A program made the translations under genes and the position numbers. The notes beneath the pieces are model-generated. The model was not told the origin of the DNA and searched no databases. It saw nothing but the letters and a program-made list of their open reading frames with translations. Of a stretch of DNA of 64,000 bases, positions 11,620 through 49,885 are shown in pieces (position 1 is the stretch's first letter; every line of letters starts with the position of its first letter). Origin of the DNA: Malacoraja senta (Eukaryota); contig JAXLNO010005073.1 of assembly GCA_038087875.1 (NCBI GenBank), forward strand, positions 310,001 through 374,000. The letters are read 5' to 3'.

Positions 11620-11769
11620 CTTTGAAGAAACAAGGTTCTGAAAGAGAAGGAAATACCAATTGTATTTAAGACCGTTGCTGTTGTCGCTGTTTAGATCAGT
11701 AAACAGATTACAGCTTTAATTCATACTTGTACGATCTGGGATTTCATCAACAAGAATCAATATACTTAC

Positions 11770-15145: not shown

Positions 15146-15263
15146 TTAAAAACATTGACGTCATTTACTAAACACCTCATTTACTAAACACGTCATTTAC
15201 TAAACACTCGAAATTTAGTTGAGATAGAAAATAGGAAGCGAAACAGCCCAGAGCTTAGAATAG

Positions 15264-24720: not shown

Positions 24721-25307
24721 TTCCCTTAGTTGAGAACAAATCAGGAAGTAAAACAGCCCAGAGATCAAAATAGACGAATCATTGTGGTTGAATTGCATAA
24801 AAGCTCTTAATGCAACCTTAACCATTGCTCTGAATTTTGCTTCAGGTCCTGAATGTGATATGAGTTTGTATGTTGGTTGCACCAAGCTTCAGTGCGTCCC
24901 TCAACACGTTTTCCTGCAGTCTGGAGTGGGTCAGGTGGCAACATTCCCTGATGGAACACACTTTGACATATCGTTGCTTCATTCCTCAGCACAGTAACAG
25001 TATGTGGGAGATGGGGCAATGTTCCTGTCCTTATAATCCAGCCTTTGACCCACAGTGAGCAGCACCAGAACGGAAGTATTGCAATTGAAGTTTTATCTTT
25101 AGAAACAAAATAGACACTTCCTCAATCTTACATTCAATGGCCTTAGCATTGAAGGCAAGCATATCATACGCCTTCTTCACTACCCTAACTACTTGTGCTG
25201 CCACTTTCCGTGAGCTATCAACGTGGACTCCAAATGCACTGAAGATATGTGTCTCAAACTGGCTCAGTCTAAAATTCTATGTTTTTTCCCCACAGGGAAT
25301 CCACAAA

Positions 25308-25395
25308 ATGAGGCCCAGGTTTTTCTGCAGCAGTTTGCCAGCTGGTTTGATGTTCGGTGTCTTTGTTTTCCGGCTTCGACCTGTTTCCACACAGA
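25308..25395 (+). CDS. Leader (signal peptide) exon MRPRFFCSSLPAGLMFGVFVFRLRPVSTQ
   Basis: Acceptor ttttttccccacag ends at 25295, ATG 25308, donor A|gtaagt, phase 1. Confidence 0.75.
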
Positions 25396-26089
25396 GTAAG
25401 TGCTTTCTCTTCACCGGTCACAACCACGTTGCTTTACTTTATCATTGTCCGTGTAAACCCACACCCCATTGTCAATCTCACTTTCCTCTCCACGTCCCAC
25501 AAATCCACCCTATCCTTGCTGGAGCTCCATTTCTGAGCCTCTCCCATTAGCTCCCTCCCTCCCCTTCCCCTGCACCAACATGGTCCTTTTCAAAGTCAGA
25601 AATGGCCCCCGGTGAGTAGTGTAAAATGGTTGTCCACACCATCCTCCCCAGCATCTTCCCACCACAGTCCAGGTGGGTGGAACTGCCCTTGACTTATCGA
25701 TCCAGTCGCAGCCCGAGAACTACCCGCAATGTCTTCACTTCACGCTCCAGCACAGTTCCCTCGGGCACCCTCCGACAATCTACCATGGACCCCTCCTATT
25801 TCCTATCCTCAAGCTGCCCTTCGGTGATATCAGCTGAAGTTTCACCGTTGCTTCCACAAGTTGACTGTGGACACCAGCTCGACCTCGCTAGCACCTCCCT
25901 CGAACCCTCCATAGTCTCCACATTCCCAGACAACACGTGGGACATCCAGGACTGGATCAGCAGAATCCCCCCCCAACTGAACACTTTGAATCCCAAAGCC
26001 GTTGTCTTCAGTCCCACCACAACCCCTTTCTCCAGCCAGCAATTCCATTCCATTCAAATCCCAGAATATTTAGGGTCAGACTGGTGATT

Positions 26090-29000
26090 CTGTGGCAGCA
26101 AACCAGACTCCAGGATGGTGTGTTGCCTCCCTGGTGCCAGGGTCCAGGATGTCTCCCAGCAGGTGTGGGACATTCTCAAGGACGAAGGTGAACAGCCAGA
26201 AGGCGGTGGGCACTTTGGCACAAATGGGATGGGTAGGAAAAGGGATGAGGTCTGATAGTTTCCCTACCACTGACATGAGTCTCACTACATTAACAACTCT
26301 CCAACCCTTCCACGAACTCACCTGTGGCGAGAGAACACACACAGATCTTTATCAAGGCTCGCTGGGCTCGTCATCTCCAGATTCCTCCCGGTGCCATGTG
26401 TTAGTGAAGGTAGGAATAGGAAGAAAGGGCAGATGAATGTATGGCTCAGGACTTGGTGCAGGGGGCAGAGATTCAGATTCAGATCTTTCTGCCATTGGCA
26501 TCTCTTCTGGGGCAGGCGTCACCTCTACAAGATGGATAGTTTGTATCTGAAATGGAGGGGACCAATAGGTTTGCAGGGAGGTGCACTAGTGTTACCAAGA
26601 GGGCTAAACTGGAGAGGCAGGGGGGGTGATGGGAAGGTGGAGATGAAGATAAGTAAGTCTTAAAAGAAGGACAGACAGAGGGAGGTGAAGTTATATAGTG
26701 AAACTAATGGATGGAGGTATGTTCATTCCAATGCTAGGAGTATTGTGGGCAAAGTAGATGAACTTAGAGCCCAGATCGCTGTTGGGGACTATGATGTTGT
26801 GGTCATTGTGGAAATATGGTTGTGACAGGGACATGACAAGCAGCTCAATGTTCCGTGTTTCTATGGAAAAAAGATGGGGGAATTGCTCTATTAATCAGGG
26901 AAACTATCTTGTTGGCATTCAGAGTGGGGACTCTGGATGGTTTGTCCATTGAGGTGATATGGGTAGAGCCATGTGAAAATAAGAAAGGTGCAAGCAATTC
27001 AACGGAATTGTATGAGAGGTCCCCCAAGAGTGAGCAGGAAATAGAGGAACAGATGTGGACACAGATTACTGAAAGATTACACAAATGGATGTCTTGGGGG
27101 GTGACTAATGGTATATTCAATAGGATGTTTTGTAACAGTTGTGAATAGTGCAACGTGAGAAAGGAATCCAAAATGGACCTTGTGTTGGGAAATGAGTCTG
27201 GCCAAGTGACTGATGTTTTAGTGAAAGAGTATTTTGGAGACAGTGAATACAACTCCATAAGTTTTAAGATTGGTTTGAATAGGGATAAGTCTGGACTGTG
27301 CGACAAGACATTAACTTGAGTAAGGCAAATTACACCATTATTAGGCAGGAGCTTGTTAAGGTACACTCAGAGCAGTTGTTATTAAGTTACTCCAAGTCTG
27401 AGATTGAGAATTGTCTGAAGGTCAGTTTATTCAAACTCAATACCGGCAAGTTCCAGTAAGGAGGAGAGATAAGACTGGCAAAGTAAGGGAACCTGAGATG
27501 ACCAAATACATTTGTAAATTTGGTCAAAAATAGAAAGGAAACACATGCAAGGTTCAAGAATATGATAGCAGAGAGGGCCATTGAGGAATATAAAGCAAGG
27601 AGGAAAGAACTCAAGCGGGCGATTAGAAGGGAGAAAATAGGCCACAAAATAGCTGTGGCGATTTGGAGTAAAGAAAGTTCCAAGGCTTCTTATACTTACA
27701 TTAAAATCAAGACGGTAGACAAGGAGAAGGTAAACAAGGATAAATGAAGGAAACTGAAACTGGAGTTAGGGGATGTAGGTGTGGTGTCAGATAACTCCAG
27801 GGATGAGAGGAGCAAGGGCAAAAGAAAAAAAATGAAATAAAATAAAATATGTCAGTAAAAAGGTGGGGTGGATTGTTTGGGGATTTGTTGCCTGAAAGTC
27901 AGGAATTCAATGTTCATACCATTAAGTTGTCAGATACCCAAGAGAAATATGAAGTGAAATTTCTTCAGTTTGCATGTGGCCTCACTGGCAATGGAGGAGG
28001 CCAAGGACAGAAAGATCAGTTTGGGAATAGGAGTTTAAATGGTTTATTTGTTTAGAGATAGAATTCAGCGAATTAAAGAACTGTGAATCACATGACAACA
28101 GTAGGAAACAATTGGAAAGGATTCTTTGGGATAGAATTGACTCCCATTTGGAACAAAATAGATGAGGGGATTAAAGACAGTAGGCATGACTTTTACGTGG
28201 CATTGTCTACAGTGATTTTAGTAAGGCACTTGACAAAGTTCCCCATGATAGACTGATGCTGAAGATTAATAAGCATGGGATTAACATTGAATTGTTTGTC
28301 AGGATTCAGAATGGGCAGACTAGAAAACAGAGGAAAAGGCAATATTCAGGCAGGAAATCTGTGACCAGTGGAGTTCTCTATGGATCTCTGCCAGGACCAC
28401 TGTCGGTCATGATTTATACAATTAATTTAAATGTAGATGGGTTGGTTAGTACATTTGCAGATGGGAACAAAATTGCTGCACTATGAACAACGCTGTCAAA
28501 TTATCAAAGTATGTTGTAAAGTAATGAATGGGATATAGACCAGCTACAGAAATGGGTGTACAAATGACAGATCAAGTTTAATCCAAGCATCTGTGAGGTG
28601 TTGCACTTTGGGAGGTTGAATATAAGGGGAAGATATACAATTAACAGCAAGGCCCTTAACAGCATTGATGTACAGAGGGACCTTGGGATCCAAGTCCAGA
28701 ACTCTGTGAAAATGGTAATACAGGTAGATAGAGTGACAAAGAAAGCAGATGGCGTGCCTTTGGTTGGATCATTGGGTATAAGAGTCAGGAAGTCAGGATG
28801 TGATGCAGCTTTGTAGGACTCTGGTTAGGCCGGATTTCAAGCATTACATGCAGTTCTGGATGCCCCAAAAAGATGCAGAGGTTTTGGAGACAGGGCTGAG
28901 AAGGTTTACAAGAATGATGCCTGTGTTACTGGATATTAGCTACAGGGAGAGGTTGAATACTTGGATTGTTTTCTCTGGAATGTTTGACATTGAAGTGAGG

Positions 29001-29360
29001 CTTGATAGAATTCTACCAAATTATGAGCGGCAAGGTCAATGTAGACAGTCAGAATCTTTTCCCCAGGATGGAAATATCAAATACAAGAGGGCATGGGGGC
29101 TTTTAGGTGAGAGGGGAAAAGTGTGAAGGAGATGTGAAGGACAAGTATTTTACAGTGGTGAGTGACTGGAACATGCTGCTGGTGGTGATGGAGGTAGATG
29201 TGTGAATGGGATTTAAGAGACTTTTGGATAGGCACATGGACATGCAGGGAATGGAGAGATATGGATTATGTGTAGGCAGATAAGACTTGGTCGTGGCATT
29301 ATGCTCGACATAGACCTTGTGGGCCGAGGGGCTTGTTCCTGTTCTGAACTGTTCTATGTT
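26090..29360 (+). mobile_element. Old, degenerate near-full-length CR1 in intron of the Ig gene
   Basis: ORF1 esterase-like CCLPGARVQDVS near 26110; endonuclease start SNARSIVGKVDEL near 26725; decayed RT and CR1 tail. Confidence 0.8.
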
Positions 29361-29765
29361 GTAAATCACTGTGGAATGAGGAGCAGGCAGGGAGGCAGGA
29401 GCATGTTTATTCTGTTCCAGGTCTGTCCGACAAGGGCCGGGGATGCGGTGTGTACAGGATCGGCCTGATCTCCACCCACATCAGGAAACCCCGTCACAGA
29501 GAACACCGGCTGGAGACCCGACACAAACGCCCTTCCACCTCCGTCTTTCTCCCACTCACTCTTCTCATGTCATGAAGTATCGCTGGATCAGGCCAGGTTA
29601 TTCCAGCCAGCCATCTATTCACAAACTGTGTCCGTCTCACTGGAGGTTCTGTGGGAGATTACAACATTCTGGAAATAAATGAAATTCAAAATTAATAATT
29701 ACAGACATGGAGTGGAGGAAATGTGCTTAAAATGTTAATTCCTACATTTTTCCTATTTCCAACAG

Positions 29766-30107
29766 AAATCAGAAATCAGATTTATTTCTTGGATAATGGA
29801 GGCGACATTGTGTTAAAAGGACCGGACAATCCTGGGAGTAAAACTGTTGTCTGGGAATGGGAACCACACTCAGGGCCTGGAAAACAGACAGTGGTAACTC
29901 TCCGCGTCGCGGACAAGGGCACGTGGAGCAGACAGTGGGGCAATGGCTGGGGAAACATAGACAAGAACCAGGAGGTGGATGTGGATCTCCGTACTGGTAA
30001 TCTGGCAATAAAAACACCCAGATTTAAATGGTCAGGATTGTTCACTTTGACCGAAACACAGCCGAGGAACCAGATCCTGAAACAATATGAAATATATGGG
30101 ATCAAAG
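29766..30107 (+). CDS. Ig domain D1, V-like without canonical cysteines
   Basis: 342 nt, phase 1-1; IVLKGP...WEW...GNLAIK...SGLFTL. Confidence 0.85.
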
Positions 30108-31663
30108 GTGAGTGGGCAAGACACGGATCAACAATATGTTTCTCTGTAAATAATGTCACGTGTAATGATGAAATATGGCGGGAATTGTGAGACTTCTTCC
30201 ACCCGATGAATCTCCCAATGAAACAATTGGGGGAAAGATTTTTCTTCATTTATTCTGTGGGCCTGGGGTGAGATTGTCGAGTGACACTGCTGCTCAATGT
30301 TACCCAGTGAACCAGGTCCATGCCTCACTTGGTTGAGATCCCAGAGGAAGTCCTTCATCTGTGGAACTTACACTGGTGGGAGAGTTCCCACCTTGAGGGC
30401 GGTCGGGGGAGACATGACAGGGACAAATGGACAAACGTATCAATCCAGTTACATCTAAACGTTGTTTGCATTCACTGGTCAGAGTGTTGCCGGTTGCACC
30501 AGCAGTGTCACGGTGAACAGCCGGCATTTACCTGTGTGAATATGAACAGCTTCAGGCCTTCCACCCATGCGTTTCACAACGAGGAATTCCACAACTTGCT
30601 GACAGTTCTTGCGGTGAATCTGCCAGCGCTCCCCTTCACTTCTCCACGTGGAGCCCAGGACTGGAGCAGGAATATGCTGATATTCCGCGATACTGACACT
30701 GGGAAAACTGCTCCCAGATCCGGTGCCTGCAGGGGTGGAGACTCTTCAGGAATCAAAACTAATTGTTATTGTAGAATTAGACTCTTTCATGATAAAACAA
30801 ATGAAATATTCAATATTAATAAATGTGTTTACTTCTAAAAGTTGGTGCCACTCAGAACCATTCCAACAGCTTGGGAGCTTTAGCAGAGGATGAACAAGGC
30901 CTTTGCCTCCTGTAGATAATTATCCACAGGTGTAAAGGGATTGGGATTTGTTCATTGTTCTAACGTTTGCCGAGATACAGTGAATGAGGTTGGATCCAAC
31001 TACTTTGATCTTCATGTTTTCCCCAGGGAAATCTCCATTGAAGAATATTCTATGCTGCAGGAGTACGTGCTGAGGGACACACTGAAGATCAGTGCAGACA
31101 AAGCAAAGGCATTGTGGAATAGAACTACAGTCCATGGACCTTCTGCCACCAGTCCCCGCCGAGCTAAATCTAATGTACAAACCTCTGAAACACTTGAATT
31201 GGTATAATCTCAGGATGCAGCATGAGTGTCAAGAGTGTTATGTACACAACATGTGTGAACACTGCCAAAGTGAGGAACAATAACACTATGTCTGTGTAGT
31301 CTGTACAATATCAAATTCAGATTTAGATTCATATTAGTTCATTGTCATATACATTTGGGTAAAACACATTCATTGTTCAGATAAAGTAAATTATAATAAA
31401 AGGTACATTAAAAAATGCAACAAAAGCAAAACAGCAGAATGGTGCAGAGATTGCAGTGCAGTCTGAAGTAATGCAACATAAAACTAACGTTTATGAAAAT
31501 GCCCCAGGGGATGATGAGTGTTTGTGGCTCTGGGCTTGGACTAGCTCGAGTTTAGAAGAATGAGGGGCGGGTCTAGGTTTTCAGTTGAGGTGAGATTGAG
31601 GCCAGTCATTGGAATTGTACAAACCACTACTCACTCTGAATCTCATTGATCTGTTTTTCACAG

Positions 31664-31930
31664 TTGAGGCAAGTCCACAGAGGCCTCTGCTGGGCAGTGA
31701 CGTCACACTCAGCTGCACCATCTCCAGACTCTCAGATACAGTCAGTCTTCACTGGAGACCCATGGACTCATCCCAGCAGAACAGGAACAACACTGATCAG
31801 ATCCGCCTGGATAACACGGTCTATCTGATGGTTCAACACGTTACAGTGGAGGATGGGAAGTATGTGTGTGATGTGCAGGAAAACGGAAACATTGTTCACA
31901 CAAGTAATGGAGATTTTACTGTGGACAACG
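31664..31930 (+). CDS. Ig domain D2, C2-type
   Basis: 267 nt; DVTLSCTIS...LHW...DGKYVC. Confidence 0.9.
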
Positions 31931-32981
31931 GTGAGTGTAAACACCTCCCATTGGATATCAAGTAGACACTTGTATCACGGTGCTTCTTGTAATATTATGT
32001 GTGTGCCCTGTGAAGAACTGTGGCAGTGACCAACTGCTCTCCAGTATAAAATGCTGCAATGATCAGGGAGAAGTTTACAGAAAGTCTCTCTGTGGACCAG
32101 CTGCCTGCTTGTCTCTGTGTGACAGACACAAAGCACAGGAGGGGGATGTCTTTCTGTAACCATTGTTCAGTCAAGTATTTGGTCAGTTTATCTTGCCATC
32201 AATGCTCCAGTATCTGAGACTGAGATACTGATACAGGACTCACGTCAAAGTGTCAGATAGAAAGTGTAGTCACCATGACAACCACCAGCACTTGCTGCTC
32301 ACACTCACACTGGGGGTCCCGGCCCACACATTAGCACTGAACAACAATCCATCCCCTCTCCCCTCACTGACCCTTCTCTCCGAGTCTGGTGTTGCTTGAA
32401 GTGATTCCAGCTGCTGCAGACTCGGGCTTCGGATCAGCATTCAGCTGGGAGCAGGACCCGGGAACAGGGAAGGACAGGGAATCAATGGGTGTGAATGGGA
32501 GAGGGATGGCGGGAATAATGGGAATGAAGGGACGGGAAGACCCGACCCACTTGAAGTGCCAACCTGTCCGGGTCAGTCCCCGCCCAGGCATCCTCTGGGC
32601 TGCTTCTGTCCGCAGCCTGAACCTGCACCACCTCCTGCAGACAGACTGACAGAGACATTCACCTCCCAGACCGCTCTCGGGAGTCTCCGGGAGGTTTCAT
32701 TCCATCCCGGGAGATTCCCGGACAGTCCGGGTGTGGGGGCGAACCTAATGTTGAAATGTAGAGTGGAATATCCAAACTTAACTGCAATTTACTGCCGTAC
32801 AGGACATTGTATTTTATAAAGATCTGATGAGTTTAGTGCGGCATTCATGAAAGATGTTACATTTGAAACTTGATCAGCTGAACAAAACACCACGAATGTG
32901 TATAAGAATACGGTTGAGAATCTCTGTATGGCACGATAACTGTAATACTGAAAGGAGTTATCCTCTGTCTCTCTGATACAG

Positions 32982-33318
32982 ATTTATATTATGGGAGATA
33001 CACACTTTACCGCTCCAGCACAGATCACAGTGAACTTCACCTGGTTTGTTCTGTGAGTGGTAGGTATTCCCGTGCTCAGTGGACCTGGACACCTCATCGC
33101 CTTCAACAGCAGAAAGTAATAGCATCTGCAGACCGTTCTCAACCCAACAATGTCAATGGGACCGACTTCAGGAATCGACTGGTGACCTCAGGGAAACCCT
33201 TCGATGGCAAGGATTTCAGTGTGAGGATTGTCCCCGTTGTGTTTAAAGATGCCGGAATTTACACCTTTTTTTCTGGAATCAAATCGATTTCCCACCATTT
33301 ATCTCATCACAGTGAAAG
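32982..33318 (+). pseudogene. Ig domain D3, V-type, +1 frameshift
   Basis: 337 nt (3n+1); T7 run at 33266-33272 replaces the F-strand Cys (paralog D7 has DAGVYTC). Confidence 0.85.
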
Positions 33319-33396
33319 GTAGGAGACAGAATGTTGCCACTGAGTTTACTGATGAACTTATTGTTTAAAATGTAAACAACCTGCTTGTTTCCACAG

Positions 33397-33657
33397 TCAC
33401 AGCTGAACCGTCTGATGCAGTGACTGAGGGAGATACCGTTACCCTGACCTGCTCTGTGTCTCACGTCATTGAGTCAATGAGACTGGTTTGGATCAATGGC
33501 GATGGCAAAAGTGTTGGAGAAAAGACACTGACTGTGGAAGAAAAATCACTGAGTCTGGTTATTCAGAAAGCTGAGAGAGGCAGAGGGAACTGGAGATGTG
33601 GTTTGTTTCATCAAGACCTGCCCCGGCTTGTTGTCCCGTACTATCAGGAGCCCCGTA
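33397..33657 (+). CDS. Ig domain D4, C2-type with WxC
   Basis: 261 nt; VTLTCSVS...LVWIN...GNWRC. Confidence 0.9.
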
Positions 33658-34662
33658 GTAAGTGATAAGGGTTTGTTCTTCATATTTAGAGTCATGATTG
33701 AGTTTTGATGTCGCTTATTGATCCTGAAATTTGAGTGGAATATTTTCTTCCAGTTTGAGTGGTCTAACTCTGTTATGAATACCGAATTGTCAAATTTCAA
33801 ATAACACTTCCCGAACCCCACTTCTCCCCCTTCATTGTGCACGCATTTATCCCACCACCCAGTTATCCTATTCTCTTCCCTTCCTCTTTCAACTCATCTC
33901 CCACCCCTTCCAATTGCAGAGTTTTCCTTTTATGTTCTTGCTCCACTTCCACCCATATCCCTCCCTCTGTTACTGATCTGACTGTAGATCAGTCAGTATT
34001 AGTTGACCTGATCTATGTCATGTTTTACTGCATGCCGCTGTGTACTCAAACAGTCATCATATTATCTAGTCTGTTAGTCCAGCCTCTAGTTAGATTCGTT
34101 GCTGAGCTTCAACTTACAACACCTAAGTATTTGAGCTCTGTGTGTTTACTATAACAAACAGCTTCTTCTTATGTATGGATCCTGTTATTACACATGTTTA
34201 TACTGACAACCTTTTGTCTCCATTTCACCCCTCCATTTTGTCATTATCTCCATCCACCTACTCATCACCATTCCCCACCTGTATTCACCTATCACTCACC
34301 ATGCTTTGTCTCATGCCTACTTCCCTTCCCCAGTTGTCACTCTCCATTCCATCAGTCTGAGAATGCATCCTGACATGAAACGTCATCAATCCATTCCCTC
34401 CACAGATGCTGCCTGACCCATTGAGTTTCTCCAACACTTTGCGTTTGGTCAACATTCCACAATCTGCAGTTTCTTGTGTCTCCATGGAGACCCACTGGTC
34501 AGCGTGGACAGATTGCTGCAGAGGGCCTGTTTCCATGCTGTTCCATGATGATGAATTATAACGTACAACTTAGTAAAGATTAATTCTCTGCAATATTGCT
34601 AATGACAAGGTCAGTGAAAAATTATTTTCCGACATTTACACATTTGTTCTCTTTTCCTACAG

Positions 34663-35007
34663 GAAGTGGACATTATATTTACTTTTTCCATCAGGAACGC
34701 AACTTTGTATTGAAAGGACCAGACAGTCCTGGAAATGGCCCCATTGACTTGGAATGGAGGGCACACTCAGCGGGACAAACCACAAAGCGTTTGGCCACTT
34801 TCCGCAGAGAAGATCAGCAGTGGGCCGTACAATGGAGTGATGAGTACAATCGAATACCAGGCATCTCCCATAGGATGCATGCGGACTGGGGTACCCTTGA
34901 TCTGAGGATCAGGATGTCCACATTCAAACTTGCAGGACTGTTCACCTGGACTCAAACAGAGCCCGCTGGGAAAATCCTGAGACAGTGGGAACTATTTGGG
35001 ATCAAAG
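34663..35007 (+). CDS. Ig domain D5, Cys-less V-like, paralog of D1
   Basis: 345 nt; FVLKGPD...LEW...AGLFTW...FGIK. Confidence 0.85.
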
Positions 35008-35416
35008 GTAATAGAGTCATAGTGTCACACAGCACTGAATCAGGCCCTTTGGCCCAATTCATCCATACTGACCAACTACCCTTCTAAACATCCCATTTGC
35101 CCTCATTTCGCCCATATCGCTTCAACCTTTTTTCCATCTACCTGTTTAAATGCCCGTTAAATGCTGTACCTGCATCAAACACTTCCTCTGCTCGATCTTT
35201 CCATAAAGTATGTTCATGTACCACACTCTTTGTCAAAACTGCCCCTAATATTAAGGGGTATATCAAATCTGCCCCTCTCACCTTAACCATGTACTATCTA
35301 GTTTTTGATTCCCCAACCCTGGACAAAAGACCATGTGCGTTTACTATAGATATGCCTCTCATGATTTTATTCACTCCCATATAATCTCTGTTAAAGACAT
35401 CCAAGAAATATAATCA

Positions 35417-35450
35417 GTCTGAAGAAGGGTCTCAACCTGAAACGTCACCT
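35417..35450 (+). ncRNA. Minimal type I hammerhead-like motif (Penelope-derived repeat)
   Basis: CTGAAGA-A-GGGT-CTCA-ACCT-GAAAC-GTC; intact core and GUC triplet, short stem I. Confidence 0.55.
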
Positions 35451-35807
35451 ATCTATGTTCTCTAGAGTTCAAAGGTCTTTTTTGTCACGTGTACCAATTA
35501 AGGGGCAGTGATATTCATATTACCAGACCTGCTGAATTACTCCTGCACTTTATGTCCTTTTAAATATTAACCAGCATCTGCAGTTCTGTGTTTCTACAAT
35601 ACTAAAAACATCCCTACCTGGAAGTGTTGATGTGGGAGACGAGGGGGCGAGGGGGACAGGTGGTCACTACCAGGAAGTGTTGATGACATCACTGAGCACG
35701 GCAGCTCAACATTCAGCCGACTGTCTGTCTGCAGGAAAAAGACAATTCTGCCCACAGTAGTTCAGAAATCTGTTGGTGAACTGAATCACATGTGTCTGTT
35801 TCCACAG

Positions 35808-36079
35808 TTGAGGCAGACTCACCGAGGCCAGTGATGGGCAGTGACATCACCCTCAGCTGTACCATCTCAAGACTCCCAGATACCATCAGTCTTCACTGGA
35901 AACCAAGAGGCTCATCTCAGCAGAACAGGGGGAACAACACTGATCAGATCCGTCTGAATAACGCCGTCTTCTGATGATCCAACACATTGGAGCAGAAAAT
36001 CCCAATCTGTACACATGGGAAGTGTAGGAAAATGGCTCCATTGTTCTCACTGGAGACACCAATGTTGAAGTGGATCAGG
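35808..36079 (+). pseudogene. Ig domain D6, C2-type, paralog of D2, disrupted
   Basis: 272 nt (3n-1); 1-nt deletion near 35969, TAG at 36025-36027, F-strand Cys to Trp. Confidence 0.88.
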
Positions 36080-36399
36080 GTGAGTCCAAAGCTGCTTTGC
36101 TGCAGGTATTAAATAGTTCTTGATATCAAACTGTTCCACATGTTGCATAGTGAGCACTGACTCCACCCGTGGGCTTCCACACTGCAGGATGTGGACATTG
36201 CCTTTACCCTGGGACATGGTGTAAATATAAAATGGTGGCACTAAGATTGATGGAGCCACACAGGAGAACCAAGGGATTCATTTCAGTTCACCTGCATGAA
36301 TCAAAGCGAATAATATCCAGTGATGGAAATAACATCTAGTTTTCAGTGTATAACAGAACAGGAAAATATGAACTAATTCAAGTATAAATGCAGAGGAAA

Positions 36400-37070
36400 T
36401 ATCAGAATCAGAATCAGAATCACATTTTATTGGCCACGTAATCATACACAAGGAATTTGACAGTGCTTTGCTCGCATGTGGTAAAAACACGATATACAGC
36501 AGACAATTAAAAATAAAACATTATAATTTAAACATGTGAAAATAAGGTACCGGAGTAAAAAGAGGCTACAGACTTTTGGCTGTTGAGTAGAGCTACGGCT
36601 CGTGCGAAGAAGTTGTTTTTATGTCTGGCTGTGGCAGCTTTGACAGTCCGGACTCACCTGCCAGAGGGAAGTGATTCAAAGAGTTTGTGGCCAGGGTGAG
36701 AGGGGTCAGAGATGATCTTACCCGCTCGCTTCCTGGCCCTTGCAGTGTACAGTTCATCAATGGAGGGAAGGTTGCAGCCAATAACCTTCTCTGCTGATCG
36801 GACGATTCGCTGCAGCCTCCAGGTATCGTGCTTGGTGGCTGAGCCAAACCAGACCATGATGGAGAAGGTGAGGACAGACTCTATGATGGTAGTGTAAAAC
36901 TGGACCATCATTGCCTGTGGCAGGTTGTGTTTCCTCAGCTGCCGCAGGAAGTACATCCTCTTGGGACTTTTTGACTGTGGAGTCAATGGTGGCCTCCCAT
37001 TTAAGGTCGCTGGAGATGATGATTCCGAAGAAATTAAATGACTCCACAGTTGTGACTGTGGTGTTGTTGA
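36400..37070 (-). mobile_element. Rex1/Babar-like LINE 3' fragment
   Basis: ORF 36654-36986 (RMYFLRQLRK...IESVLTFSIMVW...SHPGHKLFESLPSGR) and (TCTGAT)n tail. Confidence 0.8.
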
Positions 37071-37199
37071 AGATGAGTGGGGGGAGGGGAGGGGGAACTC
37101 TACAATCAGGAGGGGAGGATTGAGTCTACAACCAATTCCACTGTCTTAAGAGCACAGAACTTCAGGTTGTTGCGATGTCAACAGGACACCAGCTTTATG

Positions 37200-37615
37200 A
37201 TTAGGGTGACTTGGACATCGTGCTGAAGTAAGCATGCAGGTACAGCAGGCAATGGAGAAAGCAAATGGCATGTTGGCCTTCATAGCGAGATGATTTGTGT
37301 ATAGGAGCAAAGAGATCCTACTGCAGTTGTACGGGGCCCTGGTGAGACCACACCTGGAGTATTGTGTGCAGTTTTGGTCTCCTAGTTTGAGAAAGGACAT
37401 TCTTTCTATCGAGGGAGTGCAGCATAGGTTCACCAGGTTAATTCCTGGAATGGCGGACTGACATATGATGAAAGAATCGATCGACTGTGTTTATATTCAC
37501 TGACATTTAGGATGAGAGGGGATCTTATAGTAACGTATAAAATTATTAAGGGATTGGGCAGGCTAGATGCAGGAACAATGTTCCCCATGTTGGGCGAGTC
37601 CAGAACCAGGAGTCC
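37200..37615 (+). mobile_element. CR1 LINE fragment
   Basis: gtgagaccacacctggagtattgtgtgcagttttggtct motif. Confidence 0.85.
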
Positions 37616-37720
37616 CAGCTGACATCCCAGAGCCGGGGGTTTGTCCCTGTGGAAACTCACAACATTGTATCTCGGCGTGTATGGAAATCTAATTCTTTGT
37701 TCCCTGTCCCTCTCTTGCAG

Positions 37721-38059
37721 GTTTACATAACAAGACGTACACAGTTTATCGCTCAGTCACAGATCACAGTGAACTCGACCTGATTTGTGAAGCTTCTCCT
37801 GAGCTCAGTGAAACCAAATGGACTTGGAGATCACCACGTTTCCCGAATCAAGAGAAGGAAATAGCTTCTTCTCACAGGTCTGAGCCGATACATGTCCACA
37901 GGAGCTACTTTGGGAATCGACTGGAAACCACAGAGGGAAATGTGAATGGCAAGAATTTCCATGTGAGGATTGTCCCCGTGCAGTTTGCAGATGCCGGAGT
38001 TTACACTTGTTCCACAGGATCAAATATATATGTGACCATTGACCTAATCACAGTTACAG
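37721..38059 (+). CDS. Ig domain D7, intact V-type
   Basis: 339 nt; LDLICEAS...KWTW...RIVPVQFADAGVYTC. Confidence 0.9.
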
Positions 38060-38863
38060 GTAGGAGACTGGATGTTACTACTTTCAAGAATTAAGTTACT
38101 GGTGTAGAGTTTCTAATCTGAGTACAGACTGCAATGTCAGCAGAAATTCCCAAGTTTGAAGAATTATTTTACCTCCAGAGCTTCCTCAACTTATTTGTAT
38201 TTTGCTGAACCCCAAATCTGCCCTAAACCAACATTATTGGAAAGCACATCAAATGTTATTTTCATTTATTTTGCTGAAAACACATTGTTTTATACATAAG
38301 AGAGGGAATATGATGAAATGTGATTCACATACGTGCAAATGAGCTTCTATCGAAAATATTTAAAAATCATTCAACTTCTCTTAACACATTCCCCAAGTTT
38401 CTTTGACCCCAAATGACCCATCCTAATTTTTGAAGGCTCACTGGAGGCTTAAAACTGAGTGTATTTTGTGGAATTTATCGATTAATATTGACCTGGATGA
38501 GTGTTGTGGCCAACACTGTGGCCAGAGACAATGATGTGGGCATTGGTTGCTCTTTGTATAATTAGTTCAAAACTGTTGTGAATGATTATGGAAAAGACAC
38601 TTGGAGAGGTACATGGATGGGAAAGGTGCAGAGGGATATGTGCCAAATGTGGGAACATATTTTAGATGGAGCATCTTGGGCGGAATGGATGAGTTGGGCT
38701 GAATGGACTAAATTGTTTCATGCTGTATGACTATGCCTCTAACTCTTGTTGTGCAATATAATTTTCCACACTTCGAACGCCAGATACTGGTGTCAAATTA
38801 CTGAGAAAAACACAACACAATCCAGACAAAATTCATTGTTTTACGATTTTCTTCTTTCCACAG

Positions 38864-39133
38864 TCACAACTGAACCATCTGGCGCAGTGACTGAGGGGGG
38901 AAACGTTACCCTGACCTGCTCTGTGTCTCATGTCACTGAGTCAATGAGACTGGTTTGGATCAATGATGAAGGCAAAGTTGTAGAGGAGAAAAATCTCATG
39001 CAAACAAAGCAGGAGAACAATTCTTTGCAGCTGATTATTGCAATAGCTGATGGAGTAAGAAGGAAATGGACATGTGGTTTGTTTCATCAAAGCACAGCCA
39101 AGGTTTCCATTCCATATAATCTGCAGGTGAACA
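38864..39133 (+). CDS. Ig domain D8, C2-type with WxC
   Basis: 270 nt; VTLTCSVS...LVWIN...RKWTC. Confidence 0.9.
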
Positions 39134-39748
39134 GTAAGTTTCTTAGCTTCTGCTCTTCGTTATATCGACACAGAGTTCTTGTCACGTTGCTATTCTTTTT
39201 GGATAACTTTTAACATTCCATGTCTTACTGCAAGTAGAGCTCAATCATAGACATTTCCATCAAACTTCTTGTCCATGCCTATAAGGTCACTTCTGTTGTA
39301 AGTAGTCCAGGTCTCTGAAGCACATGTGAGCACATGGATCACTACTGCTGGCAGACCACTGACCAAGACCTGTGTTGGCCATCTCATTGAAGGTGATCGG
39401 GAATTTCATCATCAATGTCTGTCCTTGTTGCTAAGTGTCTCCACAGGTATGAAAACTGGTCCAGTAGTATGAAAACCAGTGTGTCACTGTCAACCTTTTT
39501 GTCAGAAGTCAGTATAGTAAGGTGGGCAGCTTGGTGGAAGATCTTTGCCATAACACCGAAACTGTGCCCCTTAAAGATCACAAAAGTAGTGAAAATTATC
39601 TTGAAAATAGTTGTACAAGTTTCTTTCCCCTGTTCTGATGCTGTAAAACATTACAGCGGTTGAAGCATCCACAGTAACTTCACCAAAAGCTGCCATGTGA
39701 GAACAGAAGATGTGGGGGAGGGAATACTGATGTCTTCACATTGTCTGA

Positions 39749-40020
39749 CCATGGTGGCGCAGTGGTAGGGTTGCTGCCTTACAGCGCCAGGGACCCGGGT
39801 TCAATCCTGACTACAGGTGCTGTCTGTAGGGAGTTTGTGCCTTCATCCCGTGCCCTGTGTGGGTTTTCTCCAGGATTTCCGGTCTGTACGTTAATAGGCT
39901 TGGTTTAATTGTATGTTGTCCCTGGTGTGTGTAGGATAGTGTTAGTCTGTGGGAATCGCTGGTTGGTGTGGACTCGGCGAGCCGAAGGGCCTGTTTCCGC
40001 GCTGTATCTCTAAACTAAAA
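39749..40020 (+). mobile_element. HE1/V-SINE-like SINE
   Basis: A/B boxes (GGCGCAGTGG, GGGTTCAATCC) and TAAAC tail. Confidence 0.75.
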
Positions 40021-40779
40021 CACGCCCTTTCCTCCCAATCCCACCCATCCGTTAATCCCTGCCCTTCATGTGGTCCGAAGCCTCGGTGAAAGACATTTTG
40101 TACAATGCTGACATAAGGCAAAGCACTGATCCCTAACAGAGGAAGATCCTGTAAACACCCAGTCACAAAGAAACAATCTCCACCACACATAGATCAATGA
40201 AGAGTCAGTGAAGCACAAAGTGGAAAGTATCAATGTCCCAACAGGAACACTTTAATTCCTCACAGATAATCACATCATCCAATCATAGAATTGTGGAATG
40301 GTTGTAGCAGAGAAGGTGGCCATTTGACCCATCATATCCATGCTAACTCTCATCCAGAGCAACTCGCTAATTCTACCCCCTCTCCTTTTGCCATCACATT
40401 GCAGCTTTTTCATCACTATATATTTGTCCAATTCTCTCTGGAAAGCCATGATAGAACCCAGCTCCCCAACTGATGCAGACAGTACACTTCAGACTCCAAC
40501 TACCTGCTGCCTAAAAAGATTTTCCACAAGTCATTCTAACATGTTTCCCCTTTATTTTAAACCTATAACTTTTTGTGCTCAGCCTTTCCACTGAAGGGAG
40601 CATCCTTCCACAATCCATTCTGTTCAGACTGAATAAATGATGCATAAATGAACAATGATGCCATTGATGTGATGAAAGAGCATTATTGACTCTTGTCTTC
40701 AAACTCTCTCTTCAGTGTGCCATGGGAATAACTGGACAGAGAACAGCCATAAAAAGTATCTCAATTATACCAACCATGT

Positions 40780-41100
40780 TTACTGTTTAGTTTAGGTTAG
40801 AGATACAGCGCGGAAACAGGCCCTTCGGCCCACCAGGTCCACGCCAACCAGCGAACCCGCATATTAACACTATCCTACACCCACTAGGGACAATTTTTAC
40901 ATTTACCAAGCCAATTAACCTACAAACCTGTACGTCTTTGGAGTGTGGAAGGAAACCGAGGATCTCGGAGAAAACCCATGCACATCCCGGGGAGAAAGTA
41001 CAAACTCCGTACAGACAGCACCCGTAGTCGGGATCGAGCCCGGGTCTCCGGCGCTGCATTCACTGTAAGGCAGCAACTCTACCGCTGCGCCACCGTGCCG
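40780..41100 (-). mobile_element. HE1/V-SINE-like SINE
   Basis: Reverse complement of the same SINE family. Confidence 0.75.
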
Positions 41101-42490
41101 CTTTCATTGTGTCATCTCTTTGTGACATGTTTACAGTTTGACTTGCCGATTCAAATGCTTCAATGCACCATCTGATGTGATTATTTGACTGAACACAGCA
41201 ACCTGCTCCCTGATGGTCACTGTGTGCTATAGGTTGGTGTTATTAATCCTTACTCCTGGCGAGCAGCAGTCTCCCCCTGGGAGAAGACAACAGGGCTCTG
41301 ACTACAGTCGGCTGAGAGTCCACTGAGGAATGAAGACTTTGGTTGTCCTCTGCCTGTGCCTCAGTGCCAGTAAAACCCTGCTCCGTCAGCCGCTGCACCA
41401 AGGGAGAGGCCACCCCCACCCACACCCACTCCCACTGTGGTGTCCCCACCTCCCAGATTGGAAATCTGTGCTCCTGGCTGAGCAGAAGCCTCCCCATGTA
41501 CGCTCATCTAGCACAGTCTCGCTATGCAGCAGAACTGAAGTTGAACTTTATTTTACAAGGGTAGCGCACACCAGCCTCTCCATCCTTTGGCCTCATTGCA
41601 GACTGATGCTTTTGGGTGTTGAGCTGTCCTTAAAGGGCAGGAGATATCAATCAGTGAGTGAATAGATTAGTTGGTGTGTGGAATTAATGCATGGATCAAC
41701 CATCTCCAATTTTACACTAAAAACACATGAAGATGTGTTCATTAGGATTGCAATAATAATGTGTTCAACCTCATTGACATCAGTAGGCAATGGTTACATG
41801 CACAGTTCAGTTTTAGTACTTGAAGACCAAAATTAATTTTAGGAGTTGAAAATCCGAATGAAAAATAATAATAATAATCAGCAGGACAGATAGAAAATGT
41901 GAAAGAGGAACAAGTCCAGCCATGCTCGAGGGGCTGAATGGCCTACTCCTGCACCTATTGTCTATTGTCAATTGTCAAAGATCCTTTCTATGAATCTGAC
42001 AACGTTTTATTCATCATAAAACACTTATTTCCCTTTCCACGGATACTGCTCAAACGGCTGAGTATTTCTAACGTTTACAGTTCTTGTGCTCCTGGTTAGA
42101 GAGGATTGAAGCTGGAGGGCAATATCCACTCTGTTGTCAGCAGTGCTCATTCAACCATTGTTCCAGTCTTAGACTATGATAGACATTTGTCCACTGTACA
42201 GTGGGAAGTATCACAGCTGAATCAGCTACTTTATCAGCCAACCATCAGCTCCCATCTCCTGCCTGAGGAAGTCAGCTGATTGTAACCAAGAAATAGAAAC
42301 TTGTGAGAATGTTTACAGTCTATAACTGATGGCTACTGAGGCAAATTGTGGCTCTCTGATCTTTCTGTGTAAGGTCAATTAATCTGGAAAAAAAGACACA
42401 ATGTGCTGGAGTAGCTCAACGGGTCAGGCGGAATCTCTGGAGAACATGGGTAGGTGAGGTTTTGGGTCGGGACCCTACTTCAGACTAAAG

Positions 42491-43640
42491 GGCTGTTCTG
42501 CAATGATCTGACCACGTGGTGATTGTGTCACCATCCCCTGTGTAAACCATTATCAAACCATTATCAAATAAACATGCCAGAAGTTGAAGTATAGCTAGTG
42601 TAGTCATGTAGAAAATATGGTCTCCAATTTGCCCTTAATATGTTCCTATTTACTGAGGGATGAATATTGGCCAGGAAACCAGGAGACCAAGGTATCTACA
42701 CTGCACTTTGGTGGTTCAAACGTAAAGTGAAAACTTTGCCTTGTGTACCATCCTAATATGGTCATAATTTAGGGAACACTGTGTTTCCATGGACTCTGAT
42801 TTTATCCACATGGTCTTATCCCACCACTAAATGTCTCTGACATACATCTGAAGCCATGTTCCTGGTCATTCTGGTGGATCTCATTATTAATGGGGTACAG
42901 TTTAAACACTGGATTGCTGCTTCTTTAAAATCAAGCCGGATTAAATTCTTAATCAGAAAATAATACTTATTTTCCAGAAATAACGTGACCCCAGTACCTG
43001 AGATGAGCCGTGTTACTGAATATATGTCTGTGAGTAGGAAGACAAAGAAAGAAGGTAAATAGATGACTCAGTCAATTAATCTCTAGTTGTAGAGGTGTTG
43101 TATTTGATGAAGCAACCTATTTCACATTTCACAGTTTTGTAACAAGAATGTGAGGAAGGGAACCTCAAGCACACAAACTAATTGATCAATTCAACAGGCT
43201 CTCTTGTGTCAATTCACCCCTCAGTCCCAATCTTCCGCATCCAACTGCAGGTCTTACTCTGCATTGGTCAATTGACTAATTTTCACTGGACTATCATGGT
43301 CAACCCATGAATGTTAAACATCACCATGAACAACATGTTCACACTCCTAATTTATTGTTGATCCTGATTAACAGCTTGGTTAGTGGCTCTCTAAAGAATG
43401 GACAACACTTGCCCTTTCAAAAGTCACCATCCCTTTCACAAAATATCATCTAGCATTAAATGCCTCCAATTCACTTTGCCACTAGTTCAGATTTCATTCT
43501 AAAGTGAAAATAAGAACAACATTTCAGAATGGTTTGAGCATCATTAATAGATGGTGGATAGGTGATGTTTTAGATCGAGACCCTTCTTTTGAGTCTGAAG
43601 AAGGGTCACGACCCGAAACTTCACCTATACATGTCCTCCG
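42491..43640 (+). repeat. Direct duplicate of about 44661-45800, lying upstream of the TM exon
   Basis: Near-identical sequence starting gctgttctgcaatgatctgaccacgtgg. Confidence 0.9.
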
Positions 43641-44309
43641 GGTGGTGAATCTCTGGAACTCTCTGCCACAGAAGGTAGTTGAGGCCAGTTCATTGGCTAT
43701 ATTTAAGAGGGAGTTTGATGTGGCACTTGTGGCTAAAGGGATTGAATTGAATTGAATTAGACTTTATTAATCCCCTTATTCAGGGGAAATTCAGATGTCC
43801 TTGCAGCACACTAATAAAATACAACATAGTATTAAAAAGAAGTTCAACACCAAAACATCCCCCCACAGTGGTTCCCACTGTGGGGGAAGGCACAAAGTCC
43901 AGTCCCCATCCTCTTATCCACGAATTATCCCGAATTATCGGGATCAGGGGGTATGGAGAGAAGGCAGGTACAGGATACTGAGTTGGATGATCAGCCATGA
44001 TCATATTGAATGGCGGTGCAGGCTCGAAGGGCCGAATGGCCTACTCCTGCACCTATTTTCTATGTTTCTATGTTTCTATGACCTGAAATGTCTCCTGCCT
44101 AACCTGCTGAGTTTCTCCAACACTTTGTGTCTTTTATTGGTAAACTCTCATCTGCAGTATCTTGTGTCTCAGTGAATCTGGATCACAAGTTAAACTTAAG
44201 ACTTCTGATCTAAATTAGTCAGTGTGGTTAATGCCTGGTCTTTGGGGGAGCTTTTGAATGATGTCCATTTATTCTACAAATGTGAACTCTGTGTTAATTA
44301 TTTTGACAG

Positions 44310-44417
44310 AGAATCACCATTTTGGATACATCATTGTTGGAATTATCGGGAGTCTGGCTCTTCTCATCGTCATTATACTGGCAGTGGTGTGGTGTCAAAG
44401 AAAGCGCAAGCCTACAG
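44310..44417 (+). CDS. Transmembrane exon NHHFGYIIVGIIGSLALLIVIILAVVWCQRKRKPT
   Basis: 108 nt, phase 1-1; hydrophobic stretch followed by a Cys and a basic stop-transfer. Confidence 0.9.
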
Positions 44418-44658: not shown

Positions 44659-44675
44659 GTGCTGTTCTGCAATGA
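44659..44675 (+). CDS. Possible short terminal exon (G)AVLQ*
   Basis: Acceptor tatgatttcag, phase 1, TGA 44673-44675, AATAAA 44725-44730; conserved in the minus-strand paralog (63643-63659). Confidence 0.35.
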
Positions 44676-46569
44676 TCTGACCACGTGGTGATTGTGTCCC
44701 CATCCCCTGTGTAAACCATTATCAAATAAACATGCCAGAAGTTGAAGTATAGCTAGTGTAGTCATGTAGAAAATATGGTCTCCAATTTGCCCTCAATATG
44801 TTCCTATTTACTGAGGGATGAATATTAGCCAGGAAACCAGGAGACCAAGGTATCTCCACTGCACTTTGGTGGTTCAAACTTAAAGTGAAAACGTTGCCTT
44901 GTGTACCATCCTAATATGGTCATAATTTAGGGAACACTGTGTTTCCATGGACTCTGATTTTATACACATGGTCTTATCCCACCATTAAATGTCTCTGACA
45001 TACATCTGAAGCCATGTTCCTGGTCATTCTGGTGGATCTCATTATTAATGGGGTACAGTTTAAACACTGGATTGCTGCTTCTTTAAAATCAAGCCGGATT
45101 AAAGTCTTAATCAGAAAATAATACTTATTTTCCAGAAATTAACGTGACCCCAGTACCTGAGATGAGCCGTGTTACTGAATATATGTCTGTGAGTAGGAAG
45201 ACAAAGCAAGAAGGTAAATAGATGACTCAGTCAATGAATCTCTAGTTGTAGAGGTGTTGTATTTGATGAAGCAACCTATTTCACATTTCACAGTTTTGTA
45301 ACAAGAATGTGAGGAAGGGAACCTCAAGCACACAAACTAATTGATCAATTCAACAGTCTCTCTTGTGTCAATTCACCCCTCAGCCCCAATCTTCCTCATC
45401 CAACTGCAGGTCTTACTCTGCATTGGTCAATTGACTAATTTTCACTGACTATCATGGTCAACCCATGAATGTTGAGACATCACCATGAACAACATATTCA
45501 CACTCCTAATTTATTGTTGATCCTGTTTAACAGCTTGGTTAGTGGCTCTCTAAAGAATGGACACTTGCCCTTTCAAAAGTCACCATCCCTTTCACAAAAT
45601 ATCCTCTAGCATTAAATGCCTCCAATTCACTTTGCCACTAGTTCAGATTTTATTCCAAAGTGAAAATAACAACAACATTTCAGAATGGTTTGAGCATCAT
45701 TAATAGATGGCGGATAGGTGATGTTTCGGATCGAGACCCTTCTTTTGAGTCTGAAGAAGGGTCACGACCCGAAACTTCACCTATACATGTCCTCCAGAGA
45801 TGCTGCCTGACCTGCAGAGGTAGTCCAGCACTTTGTGTCCCTTTGTGTATTAACCAGCATCTGCAGTTCTTTGTTTCTACCTTAGACAGAATCAGAATCA
45901 TATTTTATTCGCCAAGTATGTTTTGCAACATACGAGGAATTTCACTGGCCAGGTCAGTCATACAATTAAAAAGCAACAGACACAAAAACACATTTTAACA
46001 TGAACATCCACCACAGTGACTCCTACACATTCCTCACTGTGATGGAAGGCGAAATAAAGTTCAAGTCCTTCACTTGTGTTCTTCCTCGGTTGGGGGACTC
46101 GAGCCATCAAATGGTGGACAGTATTGTTTTTGCCAGAATTTAGACCACATTTCTGATGAATCTGATGAACAACAGAGAAATCTTTCTTGAAAAATCTGAG
46201 GGAACCTTTCAATAAATCAGACATTGCCCATGTTTTAATGAGAAAAATATCAATTCCTTACCTTGTTCCACAGTGTGGATCAATTGTATTCCACTGTGTT
46301 CCACTGTAAAGGGATCGATTGTATTCATATATTGTCTTTCTGCTGATGCAACAAAAGCTTTTCCCTGAACCTCGGCACACATGACAATAAACTGAGAGTG
46401 TGTGTGTGTCTGAGAGTGTATGTGTGTGTGTGTGTGTGTATAGGGGGGTTGCACGCAAGGTCACCGGGTCAAAGGGCATGACGCATGGAGCTGCTCTGGA
46501 GGACATCGCAGCTTCCAGTATATGTTGTTAATACACGAAACGCGTACTTTCCTACCTGTTAAAAACCTG

Positions 46570-48537: not shown

Positions 48538-49885
48538 GTAAATAAATAACTAACTGATGATCAGCGGCTGCAGCGGATTGTGCGGGATCGGGTCACGTGG
48601 GGGAGAAGTGAGTGGGTGAGTGAGGTCAATGACCACATACAGTACAGTACAGTACAGTACAGTACAGGCCGGTACAGTCACGTGTGTGGACATGTGTGTG
48701 GGGGGGAGAGAGAGAGAGCTGAGGGCAATCTCCACATAAACCACGTCTGGGGGAATCAAACTGGTCAAACTGGGCTCAATTATATAAACTCACCGTCTGG
48801 AGCAGCGTCCTCAGATAAAACACATTATAAATAAACATCTCCCTCTCTCTGGCTCCCAACCCCCCCCCCCCCCCCCCCTCTCTGTAAATAATCAATAAAT
48901 CACCACATAAACTGCACGTCTGGGGGAATAAACCTGGTAAATCTGGGGTAAATAATGTTATAAACACACAGGGGAGCGGAATAAACCCGGTAAAACGGGT
49001 AAATAATGTTATAAACACACAGGGGAGTGGAATAAACCTGGTAAAACTGGGGTAAATAATGTTATAAACACACAGGGGAGCGGAATAAACCCTGTCTGGG
49101 GTAAATCGGGTAAATAATGTTATAAACACACAGGGGAGCGGAATAAACCCGGTAAATCTGGGGTAAATAATGTTATAAACACACAGGGGAGCGGAATAAA
49201 CCCGGTACAACTGAGGTAAAGTAAGTAAGTTTATTGGCCAAGTATTCACATACAAGGAATTTGCCTTGGTGCTCCGCCCACAAGTAACAACATGACATAC
49301 AGTTGTTCCAACGTGACATACGGGTCTTCCAGTCCCACCTCAAGACCCATCTCTTCACCTCTGCATACCCTTAGTCCCATGTTCCCCTCCCCTCTGTCTT
49401 ACTGATCTATTTTGTTTTGTTTATTCCTGTCTCTCAATTGTAAAGCGACTTTGAGTCCTGAAAAGCGCTATATAAATAAAATCTATTATTATTATTATTA
49501 TACAGTGACAGTTAATAATGTTATAATACAGTAAATAATATTTAAAACACACAGGGGAGCGGAATAAACCCGGTCTGGGGTAAAACTGGGGTAAATCATG
49601 TTATAAACACACAGGGGAACAAAATACACAAACAGCCTCACAGCCATCAGGATATTGAACTCAACTCAAACAAAACTCTGAATATTAATAGCCCATTATC
49701 AGTTTATTTGCACTTTATCTGTTTTATTTATACATGTGTGTATAGATTTATACAATGGTATATGGACACACTGATCTGTTCTGTATTCATGCCGTCTATA
49801 TTCTTTTGTGCTGAAGCAAAGCAAGAATTTCATTGTCCAATCTGGGACACACGACAATAAACTCTTGAATCTTGAATAAACCCGG

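Follow-up and report, generated by a model that had tools for sequence, protein, structure and literature searches.

A 64-kb window of the skate Malacoraja senta (contig JAXLNO010005073.1; the window is the whole stretch of DNA that was analysed, and all coordinates are positions in it) consists of vertebrate DNA with interspersed repeats and carries on its plus strand a gene for an immunoglobulin (Ig) superfamily receptor. Ten exons of this gene were mapped, coding for a leader, eight Ig domains (D1–D8) and a transmembrane (TM) segment. Most probably, at about 75% by our own estimate, inactivation has recently turned this locus into a pseudogene or a null allele; it belongs to a multigene family of type I membrane receptors that is found throughout the elasmobranchs. 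The V–C2 modules of this family resemble those of CD4, LAG-3 and G6F.

Exon structure and lesions of the locus

The exons are bounded by AG acceptors and GT donors, and the presence of these sites at all ten exons bears out the layout of leader, D1–D8 and TM exon that had been read from the DNA in an earlier annotation (the original prediction). Its further claim that D1–D4 and D5–D8 are paralogous sets agrees with the exon-by-exon comparison, in which the pairs D1/D5, D2/D6, D3/D7 and D4/D8 show 78–83% identity at the nucleotide level and 38–73% at the amino acid level. All introns had been described as phase 1, and this is what we observed: the junctions are in phase 1, all Ig exons are of the phase 1-1 type, the leader exon has 88 nt and the lengths of the intact Ig exons are multiples of three. 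The motifs named for the C2 domains, WRC in D4, WTC in D8 and YxC (YVC) in D2, were found at these places. Pfam recognized V-set domains in D3 and D7 and ig/Ig_3 domains in D2, D4 and D8; it gave no match on D1 and D5.

Only D3 (337 nt) and D6 (272 nt) have Ig exon lengths that are not divisible by three, and translation of the conceptual spliced mRNA stops after 355 amino acids (codon 356), at the start of D4. The eight-domain receptor with an intact frame, as originally predicted, is therefore not encoded: D3 and D6 are broken and the stop comes early. Compared with D7, D3 has one extra base in or near a run of seven T at 33266–33272. Compared with the spliced contigs of relatives described below, it is 22 nt short (56 nt vs 78 nt). 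Its F-strand Cys, which is kept in 23 of 23 N-terminal cassettes of the family, is changed to Phe (TTT). Relative to D2, D6 has lost 1 bp behind position 35969, and it contains an in-frame TAG at 36025–36027. At D6, all contigs of relatives have an additional A behind 35969 and a C at 36025 (T36025C), and are hence intact. The Y-x-W that D6 shows in place of Y-x-C was considered as another sign of decay and rejected; it is a feature of the family, present in 22 of the 23 C-terminal cassettes of eight-domain proteins. When the breaks were filled with X, the hidden Markov model (HMM) of the family gave the two cassettes of the window scores of 542 and 508 bits, similar to those of intact members. 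The damage is therefore recent.

Splicing was followed in Logan contigs from four public runs, presumed to be RNA, which were aligned to the exons and are 92–96% identical to them. These contigs are spliced from the leader to D1 and onwards from D1 to D2, D2 to D3, D3 to D4, D4 to D5, D5 to D6 and D6 to D7. The D1–D2 joint (30105→31662) and the D6–D7 joint have GT..AG borders, and the ends that overhang before 29766 in the spliced contigs correspond to the end of the leader exon. Going by these joints in presumed RNA, related eight-domain copies with an intact D6 appear to be expressed. No contig of the four presumed-RNA runs matched the present copy exactly, from which neither its expression nor its silence follows. 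The lesions that break the frame of this copy are located in exons that are intact in the presumed-RNA contigs of its relatives, as expected for a pseudogene.

The cytoplasmic tail of relatives is encoded by several small exons, namely a (YxN), b (ExYMSV-type), c (IHYxSI) and d (VIYxxI). Exon b contains a sequence like the immunoreceptor tyrosine-based switch motif (ITSM), and the ITIMs (immunoreceptor tyrosine-based inhibitory motifs) are encoded by exons c and d. On the plus strand downstream of the present gene, neither tblastn nor blastn with a word size of 7 detected exons a, c or d. The YxN motif is present in relatives as HLYSN, and exon a was not found in this gene. Exons c and d occur on the minus strand only, some 30 kb upstream, and an inversion between the 1.15-kb arms at 14030–15178 and 45251–46393 would be the simplest account of their orientation. 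Alternatively, an inverted duplication with loss might have detached the ITIM exons. We propose one of these two events because turning round the 30 kb that separates the two arms would yield a complete gene again. D3 and D6 are both out of frame, D6 contains a stop, exon a has disappeared and the ITIM exons have the opposite orientation. Judged from its sequence, the present copy cannot encode the eight-domain receptor, from which we infer a loss of function.

It is unlikely that the gene is functional, with lesions that are assembly errors or the null allele of one individual, or with D3 and D6 being skipped, so that an eight- or six-domain receptor would be made. The AG/GT sites kept at all exons would fit a functional gene, as would cassettes that score like intact members apart from the lesions. 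An assembly error might be suspected for the D3 break, which lies in or near the seven-T run, but the lesions number three, are independent and differ in kind, and in D6 both the deletion and the C>T stop lie outside homopolymers. Skipping has a parallel in the RefSeq models of relatives, which include many isoforms with domains dropped; the rigid V–C2 pairs would, however, be disrupted if either partner domain were omitted. Loss of the invariant Cys in D3, the missing exon a, the wrong orientation of exons c and d and the fact that no contig is identical to this copy also argue against function. The following points weigh against our interpretation. The lesions rest on one assembly, and skipping of D3 and D6 keeps the frame (phase 1-1), which makes a six-domain product possible. 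The contigs, at 92–96% identity and from presumed RNA, have no bearing on the expression of this copy, and the inversion is deduced from repeat geometry only. Finally, what ties the family to CD4, LAG-3 and G6F are predicted structures and a single profile search. On balance, we prefer to regard the locus as a recently inactivated member of the family.

The receptor family and its V–C2 module

A search of 1.84 billion representative proteins with a profile of D1 and D5 gave 38 matches, nearly all of them 'uncharacterized' proteins of sharks, rays and chimaeras, with a few from sturgeon and eel. Using a sturgeon match as query added relatives from paddlefish and bowfin. Further searches yielded 64 and 82 chondrichthyan members, which have either approximately 450–560 amino acids (four Ig domains) or 850–1014 amino acids (eight Ig domains). 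The family is multicopy, with dozens of copies per genome, and some of its members are listed by NCBI as CEACAM5-like, VCAM1-like, CD276 homolog or obscurin-like. Two models are very long, P0001 (S. canicula LOC119965406, 1710 amino acids) with four and P0012 (Anguilla rostrata LOC135251784, 2139 amino acids) with six cassette-like units, up to about 16–24 Ig domains; these are fused tandem genes or longer arrays. The literature, searched by LOC name, by obscurin-like in combination with nurse shark and by G6F in combination with shark, revealed no description of the family; the coverage was incomplete, and this is a weak sign of novelty. The family is apparently distinct and undescribed.

The ectodomain of family members comprises one or two V-C2-V-C2 cassettes, and the prediction for each V–C2 pair is a rigid rod whose G/A strand is continuous, as it is in CD4, LAG-3 and G6F. 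The WxC motif of the membrane-proximal C2 domain, a hallmark of the family, hardly varies: of 109 cassettes, 104 carry the W of the D4-type domain, and the C is invariant. In D2-type domains, a Y stands at this position in 102 of the 109 cassettes.

Two types of tail were observed in relatives, a long tail with ITIM and YxN motifs and, in a minority, a short tail in combination with a Lys in the TM segment. Tails with IHYxSI and VIYxxI are found in P0019, P0085, P0016 and P0002, whereas P0009, P0079, P0038, P0100 and P0102 (from shark, sturgeon, paddlefish and bowfin) have the Lys and the short tail. Going by these motifs, the membrane-proximal YxN (Grb2-type), the ITSM-like motif and two ITIMs would recruit SHP phosphatases in intact members, and the minority with Lys and a short tail would pair with an adaptor that carries an ITAM (immunoreceptor tyrosine-based activation motif). 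This suggests an old pairing, in which the Lys-containing members might be the activating counterparts of the ITIM forms, and the family looks like a paired inhibitory/activating family of innate receptors.

A tree was calculated from 69 cassettes, comprising the full cassettes of 46 chosen proteins and the two cassettes of the window; partial models were left out. The C-terminal cassettes of all eight-domain proteins of sharks and rays formed one clade (Shimodaira–Hasegawa-like approximate likelihood ratio test, 98–99). The doubling of the cassette therefore took place once, before the divergence of sharks and rays. This changes the original proposal that the receptor was made by cassette doubling, as the doubling is one ancient event common to sharks and rays and did not occur in this gene. 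D5–D8 of the window were placed beside a Leucoraja cassette (78% identity) and D1–D4 beside Leucoraja LOC129701498 (79% identity). An intact eight-domain member in Leucoraja is LOC129701496.

For structural comparisons, AlphaFold2 (AF2) models of two-domain units were used, which had a predicted local distance difference test (pLDDT) score of 89 for D1–D2 and of 85 for D7–D8. D1 of the closest relative has an Ig V fold in its AF2 model, and in both models a continuous strand of 16 residues (103–118 and 107–122, respectively) runs across the V/C2 junction. Foldseek searches of the PDB with the D1–D2 model placed LAG-3 D1–2 at the top by E-value, and the best template modelling scores (TM-scores, up to 0.69) were obtained with CD4 D1D2. 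With the D7–D8 model, CD4 D1D2 took ranks 1–4 and most of the top 22, with TM-scores of 0.72–0.77. In VIA-align, which is independent of Foldseek, rat CD4 D3–D4 was the top match (Z 15.6, root mean square deviation (rmsd) 2.3 Å over 164 residues), and the other high rows covered one domain only. Among the Swiss-Prot entries of AFDB, the D1–D2 model matched G6F (rank 1, TM-score 0.67), LAG-3 and CD4, and the D7–D8 model matched CD4 first. The top rows of the ESM Atlas for a four-domain member were g6f-like and CD4 clusters. Structure prediction had been proposed from the outset as a check of the CD4/LAG-3 likeness, and the V–C2 models do match CD4, LAG-3 and G6F best.

Profile comparisons were informative against the PDB only when two-domain profiles of 19 sequences were used. 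With the D3–D4 profile, LAG-3 was found at ranks 2–4 of all PDB entries (E approximately 1e-13) and CD4 with an E-value of 1.7e-9. The alignment crosses the V–C2 junction of LAG-3 and places WxC on the WxC of LAG-3 D2 and D4. The D1D2 and D3D4 units of the family were aligned to each other by hhalign with a probability of 98.4% (E 8.6e-15, 181 columns). Profiles of single domains built from 2–3 sequences gave generic Ig matches only in the PDB, and none for D1 and D5. Word-indexed homolog searches returned matches within the family only, and no sequences of CD4, LAG-3 or G6F. Taken as predicted structures, the V–C2 modules of the family are supported as being closer to CD4/LAG-3 than to other solved two-domain Ig units.

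We consider it quite improbable that the likeness to CD4/LAG-3 is convergent or generic and that the family lies within CD2/SLAM, CTX/CAR, CEACAM, NITR or MDIR. D1 lacks the disulfide, as do the V domains of CD2/SLAM, and as a single domain it was matched by VIA-align to NITR11, NTB-A and CD48 (Z 13.5–14.7; 13.5–14.2 for the V domains of NTB-A and CD48), but the two-domain fit to NTB-A has a TM-score of 0.44 and an rmsd of 9.6 Å. Likewise, CAR, CLMP and IgSF11 appeared with good Foldseek E-values, whereas the TM-scores of CAR, JAML and SLAM are 0.40–0.46 at an rmsd of 9–12 Å. Both domains could be superimposed well only on CD4, LAG-3 and G6F (rmsd 2.3–4.7 Å, TM-scores 0.6–0.77). The names given by NCBI and the generic Ig matches of the small profiles would be compatible with one of these other groups; the continuity of the family HMM across the LAG-3 V–C2 junction, with WxC on WxC, speaks for the CD4/LAG-3 side.

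Features of the window

The exons, the detached tail exons and the arms of the inverted repeat are listed in Table 1. The D6–D7 intron contains minus-strand retroelement-like debris at 36590–37660, including a Pfam match of the ALKBH8_N type, and because of this debris it is longer than the D2–D3 intron. A 1.15-kb direct duplication (42492–43639 and 44661–45795, 96% identity) includes exon b, and the upstream copy of this exon is splice-competent.

Table 1. Mapped exons of the receptor gene, tail exons and repeat arms in the window
Feature	Position	Strand	Remarks
Leader (signal peptide) exon	25308–25395	+	88 nt; ATG at 25308; donor GT; phase 1
D1, V-like domain without canonical disulfide	29766–30107	+	342 nt
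D2, C2-type domain, YVC on strand F	31664–31930	+	267 nt; Pfam ig/Ig_3/C1-set
D3, V domain, disabled	32982–33318	+	337 nt; frame broken; Cys codon TTT at 33266–33268
D4, C2 domain with WRC	33397–33657	+	261 nt
D5, V-like domain, D1 paralog	34663–35007	+	345 nt
D6, C2 domain, disabled	35808–36079	+	272 nt; 1-bp deletion behind 35969; TAG 36025–36027
D7, intact V domain (C...W...YTC)	37721–38059	+	339 nt; Pfam V-set E 3.9e-7
D8, C2 domain with WTC	38864–39133	+	270 nt
TM exon	44310–44417	+	108 nt; TM without charged residue; basic stop-transfer stretch at end
Tail exon b (TEYMSV, ITSM-like)	45136–45213	+	78 nt; AG/GT; only cytoplasmic exon in cis
Extra tail exon b, upstream of TM exon	42976–43056	+	in 1.15-kb direct duplication
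Orphan tail exon c (IHYGSI, ITIM)	13267–13329	-	opposite strand, about 30 kb upstream
Orphan tail exon d, the last one (VIYAET and a stop)	11581–11637	-	opposite strand
Inverted repeat, right arm	45251–46393		95.5% identical to 14030–15178; begins 37 bp past exon b
Inverted repeat, left arm	14030–15178		ITIM exons c and d follow on minus strand

An open reading frame of 785 codons, nearly all of it C2H2 zinc fingers with 23 double-finger Pfam stretches, is located at 2510–4864 on the minus strand. At the other end of the window, the TM exon of a paralog arranged tail-to-tail was found at 63896–63973 on the minus strand; the TM exon of the present gene and the inverted copy at 63981–63442 share 96% DNA identity over 543 bp. 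Exon a of this paralog (61450–61551, minus strand) has a stop in place of the Tyr codon of YxN (QL*GN), and its exons b–d were not found in the window. The sequence indicates that the neighbouring paralog may be decaying too. No other paralog Ig exons are present within the 64 kb. The neighbours had been described as a zinc-finger gene and further paralogs; the zinc-finger gene and one paralog TM exon are there, whereas further Ig exons in the window are not. Apart from the zinc-finger gene and the paralog fragments, no gene was seen in the window that would correspond to the neighbours of the CD4 region. Arrays of a short tandem repeat family lie on both sides of the gene (7443–8457, 48936–49886 and 55468–56145), and a G+C-rich, strongly skewed repeat block at about 9.2–9.7 kb (9166–9720) has a copy at 47.7–49.0 kb.

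Comparison with known receptor systems

CD4 and LAG-3 are normally encoded by single-copy genes and are co-receptors for class II of the major histocompatibility complex (MHC). With them, the family shares the V-C2-V-C2 layout derived from a duplicated V–C2 unit, as seen by Pfam, AF2 and hhalign, the strand that runs from V into C2 in the predicted models and the WxC on strand F of D4, represented by WRC in D4 and WTC in D8. In CD4 and LAG-3, WxC is also a hallmark of strand F in D2 (PMC10768021), whereas the family has YxC in D2 and YxW in D6, but never WxC. The family also differs in its D1 without disulfide and in its tails, which have multi-exon YxN, ITSM-like and ITIM sequences or are combined with a Lys in the TM segment, compared with Cx(C/H) in CD4 and the single-exon (F/Y)xxL(D/E) in LAG-3. 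Furthermore, there are dozens of copies per genome as opposed to one, and many members are doubled to eight domains. The use of a single or a split exon for D1 as a discriminator from CD4 was rejected, because D1 of shark CD4 and LAG-3 is a single exon without an intron as well (PMC10768021).

These differences bear on the idea that the locus might simply be the CD4 or LAG-3 ortholog of the skate, which can hardly be maintained and is already contradicted. Its V-C2-V-C2 layout and the WxC in D4 and D8 would agree with such an ortholog, but there are many paralogs per genome, the relatives have no Cx(C/H) or (F/Y)xxL(D/E) tail, the window is devoid of CD4-region neighbours and the S. canicula members LOC119965405-7 are different from the CD4 and LAG-3 accessions in PMC10768021. 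The original prediction had favoured a separate, expanded CD4-related family over a CD4 ortholog, in line with the structure matches and the multicopy nature found here. As for the CD4/LAG-3-like character that it proposed, the layout, the rod and the WxC of D4 and D8 hold; the WxC of D2 and D6 and the tail type do not, and G6F is at least as close in structure.

G6F is MHC-linked, has a YxN motif and is a marker of thrombocytes and platelets. It is conceivable, although rather doubtful, that the family is the expanded counterpart of G6F/G6F-like molecules in cartilaginous fishes, with a switch from ITAM to ITIM, and not an offshoot of CD4/LAG-3. The fold is one argument for this, as G6F is the best Swiss-Prot match in AFDB for the D1–D2 model (TM-score 0.67) and 'g6f-like' clusters form the best ESM Atlas rows for the four-domain member; the D3–D4-type module, however, matches CD4 first, with G6F unlisted. 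A second argument comes from the teleost G6fL, which has four Ig-like domains and a conserved YxN ahead of its tyrosine motifs (PMC3528668), and the tails of family members begin with YxN (HLYSN). On the other hand, G6fL has an ITAM, whereas the family has none: its two distal tyrosines are approximately 37 residues apart and conform to the ITIM consensus. The family is also a multigene family with eight-domain forms, and the copy described here is without the YxN exon. Since layout, rod and the WxC of D4 agree with CD4/LAG-3 but their D2 WxC, tail and single-copy state are lacking in the family, and since it resembles G6F in fold and, in the tails of relatives, in YxN without having an ITAM, we class it as a distinct branch of the CD4/LAG-3/G6F kind and a member of neither the CD4/LAG-3 nor the G6F family.

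The origin of CD4 and LAG-3 and their tie to G6F have been argued from very few molecules (PMC10768021). If our interpretation is true, a large and old family of rod modules would add many data points on the evolution of the CD4-type scaffold and, for the oldest jawed vertebrates, a candidate system of innate receptors. The chances are about evenly balanced for the wider picture, in which an undescribed paired-receptor family of chondrichthyans, of which sturgeon, paddlefish, bowfin and eel retain remnants, would have built on the V–C2 rod of CD4/LAG-3/G6F, doubled it once and expanded in a KIR-like manner, with ligands that might be MHC class II-like or belong to the matrix, and in which the present locus would be a recent casualty. 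This copy mainly illustrates the birth-and-death turnover and the rearrangement of the cluster; the family as such, with its intact paralogs, is of greater interest. Distinctive features of the family are the WxC restricted to the membrane-proximal C2 domain, a putative signalling by ITIM/YxN or by a TM segment with Lys, and an eight-domain form that is fixed. The CD4-like V–C2 rod and the eight-domain doubling are known from none of the KIR/LILR, SIRP, NITR, CHIR and skate MDIR systems. What the family has in common with them are clustered and rapidly duplicating genes with pseudogenes among the copies and, in the relatives though not in this copy, the occurrence of ITIM-tailed members beside short-tailed ones whose TM segment has a Lys.

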